Shown piece after piece: positions 2,190 to 22,231 of a DNA stretch of 27,536 bases. The stretch is taken from assembly GCA_002104945.1 (NCBI GenBank), contig MCFH01000140.1:1-27536 (forward strand), written 5' to 3'. The notes under the pieces were generated by a model, which ran no database searches, had not been told where the DNA came from, and saw nothing but the letters and a program-made list of their open reading frames with translations. Position 1 is the first letter of the stretch, and each line of letters begins with the position of its first letter. A program made the translations under genes and the position numbers. This DNA comes from Piromyces finnis finn. Taxonomy: Eukaryota > Fungi > Neocallimastigomycota.

Positions 2190-2252
2190 GTTTTATCAAA
2201 GTAATAATTTTATTTTATTAAAGTAATAATTTTGCCATTACCCTTATGTTTG

Positions 2253-3299
<1,047 letters not shown>

Positions 3300-3479
3300 C
3301 AAAAATTTGATTTTTGACTCGGTATCCCATTGAAAGTCGAATACAATTACTATACTTTAGTATAATAGTGGCTTTCTTACTTTAATTAAAATTACTAGAA
3401 TATATTATACCCAATTTTTATTCAAGTAATAAATGATTATATTAAAAAAATCAATTACTAGATAACAAGAAAATAAAAG

Positions 3480-4950
3480 GTTACATATATTTTTAATTGA
3501 TACATTAACCGATATATTTTTGAATAATAGAATATTTTATTAAATAGTATGTTCTGGAATATCCTCAATAATATGTTCTTCTAAATTACTTACTTCTTCT
3601 GGCTTTTCGGATAAGAAGGTATGAATTAAATAATTATAATTATATGATAATTATTTTTATTGAATATAACTTTCTTAGAAATTTTGGGACGTTTAAGTTT
3701 AAATTTACGGGATTGACCATTTTTCTTCTATTTTTGTACTAAACTATATAAAATATTTAATAATTATTTTATAATAAAATTTTGTAAAAGTTTTACTAAA
3801 CTTATAATTTAATATTAAAATATTAAATTAATAAAAGATTAAAGATAACTAGGTTAGAAAAAAAATGTTTTATTAAAATAATCTTAATTGCTTTATAAAT
3901 GAATAATTAAGTTATGTATTATGGTTAAAATAATTTCTTTTATTTTATTTAAATAATATATATAATAATAAGATTATTTAATAATAATACTTATTAAGTA
4001 TTAATAAGATAATAATCTTTACAAAGATTTAATTTCATAAAATTATTCTAAACTATTTATACTAATTGTAATTTTACATTTAATAATAAAATAACTTTTT
4101 AATACATGATTATATTCATAATATTTTTATAATACTAAAACTAAACTTAAGACTTATTACTAATTATTAAAAATAACTATTGTTTATATATTTATAATAT
4201 TAATTATTTCTTAATTATAATATAATTCATTGCATATAATTTTAATAATTATAATCTTTTAATTCAAAGATTATAAGTTATGTTATTGAAATAATTATTA
4301 TAAAATAAAGTTAATTAATTCCGGAAAATAATTTTAATTTAATTAAAACAATAATTTATATCCTTTTGGGTGAATGATTTATGTCAATACATCAGGGGTG
4401 ATCATTCTCTGAATAAACAATTAATCATTACTAACAAAATATCTTTAAATTGAAATATCTCGTGAACCAGCAGAGATATTGACCTGATTTTAAGATATGT
4501 TGTTTATCTCGAGCGTGACTTTCTAACGAACCCACAATCTCCCAACCATTATTCAAAAATCGCTATTCGTTAAGGAGATACGCGTGTTTTTTCCTTATTT
4601 AATTTTGACGATAAGGGTTAAAGTTATTTATTATAAATTTTATTAAGGGTTAAGGTCATATCTTAACCTTTTCTAAATTTTTTAAATATTTCTTAATATA
4701 ATTTTATAATTTATTTGAAAATAAAATATTATTGATTTTGAAATTTTATAAGTAATTTCACAATTTCAAGTGATCTTGAAATTGTAGATTTCACTAGTAT
4801 TCGTGACAAATTTTCTACTAATATCAAATTTATAATATATTTATAATTATTATTTATCAGGGTTGATGCGTTGACCGATATATTTGTGAATAATATAATG
4901 TTTTTAATAAATAATAAATTCTATATTATTATGATGAAACAATAAATTTA
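3480..4950 (-). CDS. Gln-rich repeat-containing frame interrupted by element A (TAA/TAG=Gln); both ends approximate
   Basis: With A and one TSD removed: NIILFTNISVNASTLINNNYKYIINLILVE^NFIIKQLLNNFIQFSTKIEEKWSIPQIQTQTSQNFQESYIQQKQLSYNYNYLIHTFLSEKPEEVSNLEEHIIEDIPEHTIQQNILLFKNISVNVS, with no TGA. The two NI(I/L)LF(T/K)NISVN(A/V)S repeats are 336 nt apart in the second unit (in frame), and 3 of their 6 differences are synonymous. Confidence 0.62.
3783..4808. mobile_element. Element A: ~1.03-kb solo-LTR-like insertion with 5-bp TSD
   Basis: Ends TGTAAAAG...TTCGTGACA (TGT...ACA, no long TIR). AATTT on both sides (3778-3782, 4809-4813). Flanks joined match an uninterrupted paralogue at 5989-6102 (opposite strand). 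No coding capacity recognised. Confidence 0.82.
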
Positions 4951-5982
4951 AAATAAAATAAAAATATGTTTTATAATTAACAAATAAATCACTCAAAACT
5001 CGAAAATAAACTCTTATTATGTTTTAAATTAAATCTTTATTATATTCTATTTCTATAATTTATTTATTATCTGTTTATTGTCTTTTTTATTCTCTATTTA
5101 TTGTCCCCCTTTTTATAAAGAAGAATTTTATCTTCCTTTTATACATTTTCATTTATTACATGTATTATTATTTTTAACTATTAAATATTATTATTACTAT
5201 TGCTATTATTTATTAAAATTAAAAGAATAAATTAAAATTATGTCTTAGTATTATAAAATATTATAGAATATTACTTATTTGATTTTCTTATTACTTCAAA
5301 ATGTTTAAATTTAGAAAAATTATTATAAATTATCATTGACTATCATTAAATGTATAATACCTTGAATAAAATAATTAAAATTTAAAATTAAAATAATATT
5401 AAAATAAAATTAAAATAAAATTAAAATAAAAATTTAACAAAATTAAAATATTAAAAGTATCAATTATTATAAACACTCATTTTATACAGAAACATAAAAG
5501 AGTTCTGTATTTTATCTTTGGAATTGTTATTATTGTTCTATTTCCAGGTTTTAAGTTTGTCATTTTAGTAATAATTACTCAATTAGTTATTTTTTAATTT
5601 ATAAGTTTAAGAGTATTTCTAAAGAACACTTGGATAAACACTAGAATTAATAATTTGATGTATATCATTTTATTTTTAGTTTATTTATTCATTTTTATTT
5701 ATTTATTATTATTTTATTATTTTAGTACATTATTGGATTAAGTCGTTTTATTTTATTTAATAATTTATTTTATTTAATAATTTATTTTATTATTATCACT
5801 ATTAGGTCGTTTTTACTCAGAATTTATTATATAATAAAGATAATATTATTTATTTAAAGAAAGGGTTATATTTTCATAAAATTATTATTCATTCATTTTT
5901 AAGGATTATTATTGTTTATTTTTATTATAAGTTACTATGGGTTAAGTCGTGTTTATTCAGCTAGTTTATATCATGTTTTTAT

Positions 5983-6561
5983 ATGAGTAGCGTATCAAGG
6001 TTGATAAATAATAATTATAAATATATTATACATTTGATATTAGTAGAATATTTTATTATAAAATAATTATTAAATAATTTTATATAGTTTAGTACAAAAA
6101 TATAATTTACATAAAATCAAATATTTTATAAATTTATATATTATAAAAATCATTTTTAATATAAAGAATAATAATAATTTTTAGTAGAAAATGAGAAGAC
6201 TTAGATTATTAATAATAAGTTAAATTTTAATAATAGTTAATATAATTAATTAGTGAATACATAATAATATTTAAAAGACAAAAATAAGTTTTTATATAAT
6301 AAAAATTATTGTTAAAAAGAGCGTAAGAACAATAAATAAAAGAAAATATAAAAACGAAATTAAACTTGTCTAATTTGTAATTATTGTGTTAATAATAAAT
6401 AATATTTTATAGAATAAATCTGGTGTTATTATTCTATATAAATATTATTAAAATAATAAAACTATTAAAACTATAAAATAACTTAAAATAAATTAATAAA
6501 ACTAGTAGATATTGTTAAAGCTCGTACAATAGCTGTCGAGATAAAACAATATAAGATAACA
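5983..6561 (+). CDS. Paralogous Gln/Asn/Lys-rich frame (TAA/TAG=Gln), cut off by element B
   Basis: TGA-free for 193 codons: MSSVSRLINNNYKYIIHLILVEYFIIKQLLNNFIQFSTKIQ...QTCLICNYCVNNKQYFIEQIWCYY...KLIKLVDIVKARTIAVEIKQYKIT, then B. The N-terminal block matches the A-interrupted frame in the same register, and the last 20 codons show clear G-first bias. Other copies start at 11542, 13624(-), 19166(-), 23403. Confidence 0.5.
5989..6102 (-). repeat. Empty-site paralogue of the element A insertion locus
   Basis: Reverse complement reads tatttttgtac...ataataa-AATAT-tctactaatatcaaatgtataat...ttatcaa, matching 3729-3782 joined to 4814-4860 with a single target copy (6048-6052). Confidence 0.9.
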
Positions 6562-7592
6562 TGTAAAAGTTTTACTAAACTTATAATTTAATATTAAAAT
6601 ATCAAATTAAATAAAAGGTTAAAAGATAACTAGGTTAGAAAAAAAATGTTTTATTAAAATAATCTTAATTGATTTATAAATGAATAATTATATTATGTAT
6701 TATAGTTAAAATAATTCCTTTTTATTTTATTTAAAGAATATATATAATAATAAGATTATTTAATAGTAATACTTATTAAGTATTAATAAGATAATAATCT
6801 TTACAAAGATTTAATTCATAAAACTATTCTAAACTATTTATACTATTTGTAATTTTACATTTAATACTAAAATAACTTTTTAGTACATGATTATATTCAT
6901 AATATATTTTATAATACTAAAACTAAACTTAAGACTTATTACTAATTATTAAAAATAACTATTGTTTATATATTTATAATATTAATTATTTCTTAATTAT
7001 AATATAATTCATTGCATATAATTTTAATAATTATAATCTTTTAATTCAAAGATTATAAGTTATGTTATTGAAATAATTATTATAAAATAAAGTTAATTAA
7101 TTCCGGAAAATAATTTTAATTTAATTAAAACAATAATTTATATCCTTTTGGGTGAATGATTTATGTCAATACATCAGGGGTGATCATTCTCTGAATAAAC
7201 AATTAATCATTACTAACAAAATATCTTTAAATTGAAATATCTCGTGAACCAGCAGAGATATTGACCTGATTTTAAGATATGTTGTTTGTCTCGAGCGTGG
7301 CTTTCTAACGAACTTAATTATAACCAAAATATTATTATTCAAAAATCGTCATTCGTTGAGGAGATACGCGTGTTTTTTCTTATTCCATTTTAACGATAAG
7401 GGTTAAAGTTATTTATTATAAAAATTATTAAGGGTTAAGGTCATATTTTAACCTTTTCTAAATTTTTAAATATTTCTTAATAAAATTTTATAATTTATTT
7501 GAAAATAAAATATTTGTTGATTTTGAATTTTCATAAGTGATTTCACAATTCCAAGTGATCTTGAAATTGTAATTTCACTAGTATTCGTGACA
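6562..7592. mobile_element. Element B: diverged second copy of the same ~1.03-kb element, no matching TSD
   Basis: Homology to A starts and stops at the same TGT/ACA ends. It has an identical ~400-bp core and substitutions/indels in both outer parts. Flanks TAACA and ATTTT differ. Confidence 0.78.
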
Positions 7593-7657
7593 ATTTTTTC
7601 CATGTGTCCAAATTTTTTAAATTTTTATATATGTTATTGTGACAAAATAACAAAAGT

Positions 7658-7729
7658 GGGGTGTTAGCTCAGCGGTAGAGCAATTGACTGCAGATCAATA
7701 GGTCTTCGGTTCAAATCCGGAACGCCCCT
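7658..7729 (+). tRNA. trnC-GCA: tRNA-Cys(GCA)
   Basis: Identical to 2099-2170. Confidence 0.97.
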
Positions 7730-7811
7730 TACTTTTAATTTTTTTTTTGTTTTATCAAAGTAATAATTTTATTTTATTAAAGTAATAATTTTGCCATTAC
7801 CCTTATGTTTG

Positions 7812-8861
<1,050 letters not shown>

Positions 8862-9345
8862 CAAAAATTTGATTTTTGACTCGGTATCCCATTGAAAGTC
8901 GAATACAATTACTATACTTTAGTATAATAGTGGCTTTCTTACTTTAATTAAAATTACTAGAATATATTATACCCAATTTTTATTCAAGTAATAAATGATT
9001 ATATTAAAAAAATCAATTACTAGATAACAAGAAAATAAAAGGTTACATATATTTTTAATTGATACATTAACCGATATATTTTTGAATAATAGAATATTTT
9101 ATTAAATAGTATGTTCTGGAATATCCTCAATAATATGTTCTTCTAAATTACTTACTTCTTCTGGCTTTTCGGATAAGAAGGTATGAATTAAATAATTATA
9201 ATTATATGATAATTATTTTTATTGAATATAACTTTCTTAGAAATTTTGGGACGTTTAAGTTTAAATTTACGGGATTGACCATTTTTCTTCTATTTTTGTA
9301 CTAAACTATATAAAATTATTTAATAATTATTTTATAATAAAATTT

Positions 9346-12103: not shown

Positions 12104-13044
12104 TGTAAAAGTTTTACTAAACTTATAATTTAATATTAAAATATCAAATTAAATAAAAGGTTAAAAGATAACTAGGTTAGAAAAAAAATGTTTTATTAAA
12201 ATAATCTTAATTGATTTATAAATGAATAATTATATTATGTATTATAAGTTAAAATAATTCCTTTTTATTTTTTTTAAAGATATATATAATAATAAGATTA
12301 TTTAATAGTAAATACTTATTAAGTATTAATAAATAATAATCTTTACAAAGATTAATTCATAAAACTATTCTAAACTATTTATACTATTTGTAATTTTACA
12401 TTTAATACTAAAATAACTTTTTAGTACATGATTATATTCATAATATATTTTATAATACTAAAACTAAACTTAAGACTTATTACTAATTATTAAAAAATAA
12501 CTATTGTTTATATATTAATAAATTAAATTTCTAATTATAATTATTATTGTATAATTTTATAATTATAATTTAATTAAATTATAAATTATTTTATTATAAT
12601 AATTATTATAAATAAATTAAATAATTGAAAATAAAAAAATTAATTAAAAATAATTATTTTTTAATAATTAGTAATAATCTTAATTTAGTTTTAGTATTAT
12701 AAAATATATTATGAATATAACATGTACTAAAAGTTATTTTAGTATTAAATGTAAAATTACAAATAGTATAAATAGTTTAGAATAGTTTTATGAATTAAAT
12801 CTTTGTAAAGATTATTATCTTATTAATACTTAATAAGTATTACTATTAAATAATCTTATTATTATATATATCTTTAAATAAAATAAAAAGGAATTATTTT
12901 AACTATAATACATAATATAATTATTCATTTATAAATCAATTAAGATTATTTTAATAAAACATTTTTTTTCTAACCTAGTTATCTTTAACTTTTATTTAAT
13001 TTGATATTTTAATATTAAATTATAAGTTTAGTAAAACTTTTACA
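12104..13044. mobile_element. Two partial element B copies face-to-face across junction 2
   Basis: Outer ends TGTAAAAG at 12104 and CTTTTACA at 13044; B-specific variants. Confidence 0.75.
12510..12700. other. Fold-back junction 2 (plus to minus) inside element B
   Basis: Forward arm decays to ...aataattgaaaataa (cf. aattaattccggaaaataa) and reverse arm restarts at ttttaataattagtaataa; offset ~150 nt. Confidence 0.88.
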
Positions 13045-20324: not shown

Positions 20325-22231
20325 TGTCACGAATACTAGTGAAATCTACAATTTCAAGATCACTTGAAATTGTGAAATTACTTATAAAATTTCAAAATCA
20401 ATAATATTTTATTTTCAAATAAATTATAAATTATATTAAGAAATATTTAAAAATTTAGAAAAGGTTAAGATATGACCTTAACCCTTAATAAAATTTATAA
20501 TAAATAACTTTAACCCTTATCGTCAAAATTAAATAAGGAAAAACACGCGTATCTCCTTAACGAATAGCGATTTTTGAATAATGGTTGGGAGATTGTGGGT
20601 TCGTTAGAAAGTCCGCTCGAGATAAACAACATATCTTAAAATCAGGTCAATATCTTGCTGGTTACGAGATATTTCAATTTAAAGATATTTGTTAGTAATG
20701 ATTAATGTTTATTCAGAGAATGATCACCCTGATGTATTGACATAAATATACCCAAGATATAAATTATTGTTTTAATTAAATTAAAATATTTTCCGGATTA
20801 ATTAACTTTATTTTATAATAATTATTTCAATAACATAACTTATAATCTTTGAATTAAAAGATTATAATTATTAAAATTATATGCAATGAATTTATTATAA
20901 TTAAGAAATAATTAATATTATAAATATATAAACATAGTTATTTTTAATAATTAGTAATAAGTCTTAAGTTTAGTTTTAGTATTATAAAATATATTATGAA
21001 TAATCATTATTAAAAGTTATTTTATTATTAAATGTAAAATTACAATTAGTATAAATAGTTTAGAATAATTTTATGAAATTAAATCTTTGTAAAATTATTA
21101 TCTTATTAATACTTAATAAGTATTATTATTAAATAATCTTATTATTATATATATATTTAATAAAATAAAGAAATTATTTTAACCATAATACATAATTAAT
21201 TATTCATTTATAAGCAATTAAGATTATTTTAATAAAAACATTTTTTTCTAACCAGTTATCTTTAATCTTTTATTTAATTTAATTTTTAATATAATTATAA
21301 GTTAGTAAAACTTTTACAAAATTTTATTATAAAATATTATTAAATAATTTTATATAGTTTATACATGTTTAAAATATTTTATTTATTTAAATAATATATA
21401 TAATAATAAGATTATTTAATAATAATACTTATAAGTATTAATAAGATATAATCTTTACAAAGATTTAATTTCATAAAATTATTCTAAACTATTTATACTA
21501 ATTGTATATTTTACATTAATAACTTTTTAATACATGATTATATTCATATATATTTTATAATACTAAAACTAAACTTAAGACTTATTACTAATTATTAAAA
21601 TAACTATTGTTTATATATTTATAATATTAATTATTTCTTAATTATAATATAATTCATTGCATATAATTTAATAATTATAATCTTTTAATTCAAAGATTAT
21701 AAGTTATGTTATTGAAATAATTATTATAAAATAAAGTTAATTAATTCCGGAAATAATTTTAATTTAATTAAAACAATAATTTATATCCTTTTGGGTGAAT
21801 GATTTATGTCAATACATCAGGGGTGATCATTCTCTGAATAAACAATTAATCATTACTAACAAAATATCTTTAAATTGAAATATCTCGTGAACCAGCAGAG
21901 ATATTGACCTGATTTTAAGATATGTTGTTTATCTCGAGCGTGACTTTCTAACGAACCCACAATCTCCCAACCATTATTCAAAAATCGCTATTCGTTAAGG
22001 AGATACGCGTGTTTTTCCTTATTTAATTTTGACGATAAGGGTTAAAGTTATTTATTATAAATTTTATTAAGGGTTAAGGTCATATCTTAACCTTTTCTAA
22101 ATTTTTTAAATATTTCTTAATAAATTTTATAATTTATTTGAAAATAAAATATTATTGATTTTGAAATTTTATAAGTAATTTCACAATTTCAAGTGATCTT
22201 GAAATTGTAGATTTCACTAGTATTCGTGACA
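20325..22231. mobile_element. Element A copy (20325-21318, inverted) plus partial A copy (21377-22231) across junction 3
   Basis: A-specific variants (aacccacaatctcccaacc) in both. Confidence 0.77.
21355..21385. other. Fold-back junction 3 (minus to plus) at the left end of element A
   Basis: Reverse arm runs to the equivalent of ~3737 and forward arm resumes at the equivalent of ~3940, giving an inversion with a ~200-nt unpaired spacer. Confidence 0.88.

Follow-up and report, generated by a model that had tools for sequence, protein, structure and literature searches.

A 1-kb insertion in a tRNA-Cys array of Piromyces finnis: very likely a solo long terminal repeat of a Ty3/gypsy retrotransposon nested in the long terminal repeat of a second family

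The window, a 27,536-nucleotide stretch of DNA from the anaerobic gut fungus Piromyces finnis, contains at positions 3783-4808 an insertion, here called A1, which an initial annotation had described as a mobile element sitting inside a coding frame and possibly excised during development. A1 is very likely a solo long terminal repeat (LTR) of a Ty3/gypsy (Metaviridae) retrotransposon, nested in the LTR of another retrotransposon family (family H), with nothing in the arrangement that is coding host sequence and no evidence of developmental excision. The window is identical with one entire contig (C47) of the assembly G000 (56,455,805 bp in 232 contigs), and its GC content varies between 11 and 27%. 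The insertion, the duplication at its target and the two parts of the split host LTR are placed as follows.

3783..4808, minus strand: A1, read as a solo LTR of a Ty3/gypsy family (family A); sharp ends common to the copies, ~93% identity to the LTRs around gag-pol in loci L035-L041
3778..3782, no strand: left copy of the target-site duplication AATTT; the single-copy empty form occurs 83 times in the assembly
4809..4813, no strand: right copy of the target-site duplication AATTT, from sequence inspection
3726..3782, minus strand: left part of the family H LTR H#1, positions ~103 to 47 of the 621-bp LTR, truncated at 3726 (blastn against the H element L026:1853-8428, 92-94% identity)
4814..4859, minus strand: right part of H#1, the first ~46 bp of the LTR, with the TG...CA terminus …TTATTTATCA at 4859 (sequence and blastn against the H element)

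A1 is a discrete unit of 1026 bp with the ends TGT...ACA, which on the displayed strand read TGTAAAAG...CGTGACA. Out of 589 first-look candidates, ~40 full-length matches were scored (93-100% identity, on at least 13 contigs), and the same two termini are present in every full-length copy examined. Eight dispersed solo copies are flanked by perfect 5-bp duplications (TCTAT, GTAGT, TAATT, GTAAT, ATTTT, TTATT, ATATA and AATTT), the chance of a 5-bp match at the local base composition being ~0.007. The termini form an inverted repeat of only 3 bp (TGT/ACA), without long terminal inverted repeats. The annotated TG...CA-bounded insertion between AATTT repeats is thus confirmed, as is its description as a multicopy, LTR-like element made by an integrase, with the TG...CA ends kept and 5-bp duplications at the eight solo and at six full-length copies. 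It also holds that precise removal rebuilds an existing sequence: the 28-mer of the empty junction, TTTTATAATAAAATTTTCTACTAATATC, is found in the assembly 83 times exactly and 152 times with up to three mismatches, against 2 matches of the reversed control.

The search for copies, duplications and full-length elements of the A family led to gag, reverse transcriptase, RNase H and integrase located between two copies of the LTR. The full-length element at 1927752-1935436 of contig C112 (L035) spans 7685 bp, with an A-family LTR at both ends, and encodes a gag of 314 and a pol of 1239 amino acids. In the Pfam search, gag matches Retrotrans_gag, and pol matches RVT_1, two RNase H models, Integrase_H2C2, rve and SH3_Tf2-1. 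The order of the pol domains (RVT_1 at 349-508, RNase H at 571-702, integrase at 813-981) is that of the Ty3/gypsy group, and the best solved relative of the protein is the Ty3 Gag-Pol polyprotein (7q5b, E 1.5e-136). Altogether seven elements (L035-L041) carry the A-family LTR at both ends of gag-pol. Six whole elements measure 7677-7696 bp, with LTR pairs that are 99.7-100% identical and with duplications that are all perfect (ATAAT three times, TAATT, TTAAT and AAGTT), and the 4.5-kb gag-pol body is present in at least 21 copies at 99-100% identity. Judged from these sequences, the A family is active or very recently active. The copies without duplications are flanked by shared sequences that lead into gag/pol on the opposite strand, therefore the true orientation of A1 is that of the minus strand, 5'-TGTCACGAAT...CTTTTACA-3'.

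The duplications of the A family are strongly biased to ATAAT-like words. Head-to-tail arrangements of two LTRs separated by 5 bp are also present (spacer ATAAT in L036, TAATT in L005), and the 5-bp target at the side of an older copy is used again by new copies. One further candidate for a full-length element (C202:73034-85576) was set aside, with a nested copia-like insertion and without a matching duplication.

The sequence split by A1 is itself an LTR. A1 interrupts positions 1-103 of an H LTR and lies 51 bp inside the terminus of H#1. Matches to the empty-junction 28-mer are paired on the same strand, 3.9 or 5.95 kb apart, and the four pairs that were fetched are pairs of 621-bp LTRs, 98-100% identical, bounded by TG...CA and accompanied by 4-bp duplications. 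Beside these LTRs are a classical primer-binding site (TGGTGGAGAACC...) and a polypurine tract (AGGGGAGGAAA), and between them are gag (Ty3_capsid) and a pol of 1281 amino acids, which shows only 29-30% identity to the pol of the A family. Family H is Ty3-like and occurs in two forms, a 6.58-kb autonomous element (e.g. G000:C13:940350-946926) and a 4.5-kb deletion derivative.

On both sides of H#1 the window continues with further retroelement pieces, and with a tRNA gene that is the likely anchor of the whole stack.

3496..3550, plus strand: start of a C-like LTR, TGATACATTAACCGATATATTT... (39 of 58 positions match the start of the repeat C at 4862-4919, the first ~36 nt gap-free)
3551..3729, minus strand: M, a decayed pol fragment of a third gypsy family (at least 25 dispersed copies, 86-89% identity, within long pol open reading frames in L031-L033)
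4864..5997, no strand: C, a 1134-bp LTR-type repeat bounded by TG...CA, with flanks GGGT (4860-4863) and AGGT (5998-6001) (at least 35 dispersed copies, 90-98% identity, same ends at query 56-1190)
6002..6561, plus strand: H#2, positions 1 to ~574 of an H-family LTR, holding the empty-site 28-mer at 6036-6063 (94% identity to the H LTR)
6562..7592, minus strand: A2, a second A-family LTR, 95% identical to A1, with flanks TAACA versus ATTTT
7658..7729, plus strand: tRNA-Cys(GCA); the true 5' end of A2 lies 65 bp away (ARAGORN and Rfam, 67.9 bits)
7884..8986, plus strand: D, a decayed 3' part of the second open reading frame (ORF2) of a non-LTR retrotransposon (long interspersed nuclear element, LINE), broken by an (AAT)n microsatellite (at least 25 copies, 87-88% identity; within a 977-amino-acid open reading frame in L034; CCHC-type knuckle in L029)

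As the two flanks of A2 differ and there is no target duplication, A2 is read as a recombinant between two insertions.

Both families are associated with tRNA genes, as read from sequence positions in samples that are small for either family. The ten H elements sampled are L024-L027 and L056-L061. Six of them are located 12-17 bp upstream of genes for tRNA-Ser, -Thr, -Ser, -Cys, -Cys and -Trp, in either orientation. All four H elements fetched first are tRNA-adjacent, and the remaining four of the ten border directly on the end of some other LTR, which is what repeated landing at one tRNA-proximal site would produce. For the A family, the true 5' end of the LTR is found 65-67 bp upstream of a tRNA gene at eight sites, always in divergent orientation (Gly twice, Ala, Arg, Ser, and Cys three times, including A2 in the window). 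The spacers between LTR and tRNA gene are of at least six mutually unrelated sequences, and several of them close with what is left of an LTR terminus, at -12 to -15. In total, 7 of the 16 young A-family copies examined are at such a site. The loci concerned are L038, L040, L041, L043, L045, L047 and L051, together with the window spacer at 7593-7657. To our knowledge, a spacing of 65-67 bp upstream of tRNA genes has not been described for any LTR retrotransposon.

The same spacing can be reconstructed for A1. The 51 bp between A1 and the terminus of H#1, a 4-bp flank and a further ~11 bp add up to 66 bp, which suggests that H#1 was the element nearest to the tRNA gene when A1 landed, before the arrival of C, H#2 and A2. 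A full A-family element would have been integrated by its own integrase into the older H LTR, 51 bp inside the terminus, duplicating AATTT, and recombination between its two LTRs would then have left a single one, A1. The H LTR was at that time probably ~12-16 bp upstream of the tRNA gene, which would put A1 at the 65-67 bp position. Later arrivals close to the tRNA gene (C, H#2 and A2) would have pushed A1 away from it, and finally the whole stack, with tRNA-Cys and the LINE fragment, would have been amplified. The product of this last step is observed directly: the LTR stack, tRNA-Cys and the LINE fragment are amplified jointly as a 5.56-kb tandem array on three contigs (window 1-27536 on C47, G000:C74:940-21700 and G000:C79:829000-851700). 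The left junction specific for this locus, 3729/3730, where the gypsy pol fragment meets the H LTR, is confined to the arrays on C47, C74 and C79, and it adjoins a copy of the element in every case scored for one (all but one case), which places the insertion before the amplification of the array.

Some observations weigh against parts of this account. The full-length pair on C112 lacks a matching duplication and its LTRs are only 97.7% identical; this pair may be read, like A2, as a recombinant, both being without duplication. A1 shares only ~93% identity with the LTRs of the young full-length elements and thus belongs to an older subfamily, of which an intact element was not found. No TGG-type tRNA primer-binding site is present downstream of the 5' LTR of the A-family element. 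In the flanks of solo copies (L002-L019, within 500 bp) a tRNA gene is found in 1 of 18 cases, so the targeting is not obligatory, and the position of A1 relative to a tRNA gene is reconstructed, not seen.

With respect to priming, the 5' LTR is followed immediately by 11 nt, ATAATCTTTAC, that form an exact complement to positions 789-799 of the LTR, and the chance of such a match at offset 0 is below 1%. Complementarity of at least 8 nt between the primer-binding region and the tRNA-Cys of the window was not found. A purine-rich GGCGGAGCGA is located immediately before the 3' LTR in all seven elements. Because of the 11-nt complementarity and the missing tRNA-type primer-binding site, the A family may be self-priming, as Tf1 is. 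The site is represented in L035 by 7007-8037 (5' LTR, minus strand) plus the 11 nt downstream, and in the window by 4011-4021.

We lean, with some reserve, towards regarding the A family as a Tf1-like self-priming Ty3/gypsy element that may insert at a constant distance from tRNA genes, 65-67 bp upstream and always divergent, and that coexists with Ty3-like families at -12 to -17, both classes building layered, ordered stacks, one of which was amplified together with tRNA-Cys in the 5.56-kb arrays. To the opposite explanation, that A1 hit the H LTR by chance in a repeat-rich region and that the 51-bp geometry is coincidental, without any tRNA-relative targeting, we give somewhat less than an even chance. 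It agrees with the fact that most solo copies have no tRNA gene nearby and that only 7 of 16 young copies do, and with the outcome of a permissive Rfam search of 3400-7800, in which no tRNA-like sequence was found near A1 or in C and tRNA-Cys was the only hit. Against chance landing stand the eight sites at exactly 65-67 bp upstream in a single orientation, several of them with a spacer that, as at A1, closes with the remains of an LTR terminus at -12 to -15, and the sum of 51, 4 and ~11 bp, which reproduces the spacing.

It is very unlikely that A1 is an independent transposable unit, be it a non-autonomous terminal-repeat element or a DNA transposon, and not the LTR of an autonomous retrotransposon. 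Most of the scored copies are solitary, as such an element would be, and some are flanked by other shared sequences (...agttacttttagggttaacttaaa in L002, L013 and L016), but the seven elements with the A-family LTR on both sides of gag-pol, the terminal inverted repeat of just 3 bp and the 5-bp duplications, which fit retroviral-type integrases, all speak for an LTR.

The claim that A1 sits within a coding frame does not survive the identification of its flanks, which are positions 1-103 of an H LTR and decayed pieces of retroelements. The distance between two supposed peptide repeats, given as 336 nt after removal of the insert, is 335 nt when measured by the anchor ACCGATATATTT (3508 and 4874) and is not a multiple of three, and the repeats themselves are the similar first ~36 nt of the LTR-type repeats at 3496 and 4864, not protein repeats. 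The same frame had been noted uninterrupted at 5983-6102. A copy of the sequence is indeed present there (28-mer at 6036-6063, one mismatch, minus strand), but it is part of the H#2 LTR. The absence of TGA from the joined frame carries no weight as evidence, as 2 of the 6 frames of the joined 440 nt and 18% of the 146-codon windows of the contig are without TGA, and at 15-20% GC at least one TGA-free frame is expected by chance. Translation with table 6 (ciliate code), in which TGA alone is a stop, yields 182 open reading frames of at least 100 amino acids, spread over all six frames of the contig, and is uninformative. The proposed reading of TAR as Gln is contradicted by the 1239-codon pol, which contains 30 CAA and 1 CAG codons, no internal TAA, TAG or TGA, and a terminal TAA. 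Long open reading frames of the assembly encode at least 150 fungal dockerin (CBM10) domains, which are characteristic of anaerobic gut fungi. The host belongs to this group and has the standard genetic code; it is not a ciliate, and with this the ciliate, TAR=Gln and internal-eliminated-sequence readings fail.

The junctions were examined by aligning Logan contigs of public runs to positions 3300-5300. In two DNA runs, contigs run from the left flank into CTACTAATATCAAAT and from TTATAATA into the right flank, which corresponds to the empty junction. The developmental excision suggested earlier is not needed for these contigs, which are accounted for by at least 83 unoccupied paralogous LTRs; an empty allele of the A1 locus was not seen in the assembly, and the Logan empty-junction contigs are not separable from those paralogs. 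DNA contigs that join 4808/4809 to 3781-3783 carry 3-5 letters between the LTR ends. Contigs of two other runs (X5 and X6, only guessed to be RNA) cover parts of the LTR at 4288-4809, including a tail-to-head LTR junction. That A1 is a germline-limited internal eliminated sequence (IES) of a ciliate-like TAR=Gln organism, interrupting a gene and excised precisely with one AATTT left behind, is extremely improbable: the TG...CA ends, short direct repeats, TGA-free frame after removal, empty-junction DNA contigs and loose ends at 3783 and 4808 would suit it, but the host is a gut fungus with its dockerins, long open reading frames are entirely without TAA/TAG and end in TAA, the flanking sequence is an LTR and no gene is interrupted, TGA-free frames arise by chance, the unoccupied paralogous LTRs explain the empty junctions, and the locus-specific junction is found only in the arrays, beside a copy of the element wherever this was scored.

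A1 is, then, an ordinary solo LTR nested in another LTR, an arrangement of a well-known kind, and the ~66-bp tRNA spacing and the possible self-priming are of modest interest. The A family resembles Ty3 of Saccharomyces cerevisiae (with its sigma solo LTRs) in the TG...CA LTRs, the 5-bp duplication, the order of gag followed by protease, reverse transcriptase, RNase H and integrase, the solo LTRs, probably from LTR-LTR recombination, the association with tRNA genes, and a pol closest to Ty3 Gag-Pol among solved structures. It differs in the length of the LTR (1.03 versus 0.34 kb), in the position 65-67 bp upstream of the mature tRNA 5' end with fixed divergent orientation, in having no tRNA-type primer-binding site, and in its host, an anaerobic gut fungus. 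With Tf1/Tf2 of Schizosaccharomyces pombe it shares the match of the integrase C-terminus to Pfam SH3_Tf2-1 and the pairing of the 11 nt after the LTR with a site inside the LTR. Tf1 self-primes through such LTR-internal complementarity; it targets RNA polymerase II promoters, whereas the A family is found at tRNA genes, and the self-priming proposed for the A family is deduced from its sequence. In Dictyostelium discoideum, DGLT-A is found at 13-33 bp and TRE5-A at ~48 bp from tRNA genes. The A family is like these two and Tj1 of Schizosaccharomyces japonicus in its fixed distance upstream of tRNA genes and its pile-ups, and unlike them in lineage and distance. Ty3 inserts 1-4 bp from the RNA polymerase III (Pol III) start, and Tj1 is found 1-10 bp from the start site (PMC5911963). 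DGLT-A, TRE5-A and Tj1 come from compact or AT-rich genomes, where each keeps a set distance upstream of tRNA genes and accumulates (PMC5006619, PMC5911963). The likeness to ciliate IESs (the TA-IESs of Paramecium and the transposon-derived ones of Tetrahymena and Oxytricha) is superficial, limited to an insert bounded by short repeats whose removal restores continuity, while A1 has no ciliate host, no ciliate code and no interrupted gene, and shows no evidence of excision.

The result is mainly a correction. Where a genome is this rich in AT, decayed repeats yield TGA-free frames, and seemingly a TAR=Gln code, by chance. If taking out an insert precisely restores a sequence, this shows only that a transposon was inserted; it does not make the host sequence a gene. 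A further outcome is the record of a Ty3/gypsy family with current or recent activity in an anaerobic gut fungus. Mobile elements of this group are little described, and literature searches on retrotransposons of Piromyces or Neocallimastigomycota gave nothing specific. Besides the classical Ty3-like landing position (~-15) there is apparently a second one relative to the tRNA gene (~-66), which could serve studies of the recognition of the Pol III machinery by integrases in an early-diverging fungus.

In the stack, the H LTR ends exactly 4 bp from the termini of C, on both sides in the window and at two other loci (right flanks of L024 and L027), a spacing that would fit successive families re-using one tRNA-proximal target. 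Positions 3489-4859 were also considered as a short, 340-bp LTR variant ('K'), which was rejected as the copies show three joined pieces: a C-like start, part of a gypsy pol and 103 bp from the H LTR.

The window is built of ~2.78-kb units, direct or inverted, with a super-period of 5.56 kb. The contig contains five identical tRNA-Cys(GCA) genes, and at least 40 such identical genes are present in the assembly, 13 of these in the arrays. The segment between 12.1 and 21.3 kb is inverted relative to the rest of the window, and head-to-head palindromic junctions are located inside LTR copies at 12104-13044 and 20325-22231. The inverted segment may be a real inverted duplication or an artefact of long-read assembly, the contig being composed of the array only. 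Decayed 3' parts of LINE ORF2 occupy 2245-3424 and 7804-8986, interrupted by a length-variable (AAT)n tract (2746-2866). Two unrelated inter-LTR spacers, 4809-6561 and 7593-9345, are both 1753 bp long in the window. In the sister arrays the same spacers measure 1753-1755 and 1755-1760 bp, depending on the (AAT)n tract, thus the exact equality of the two lengths is accidental.

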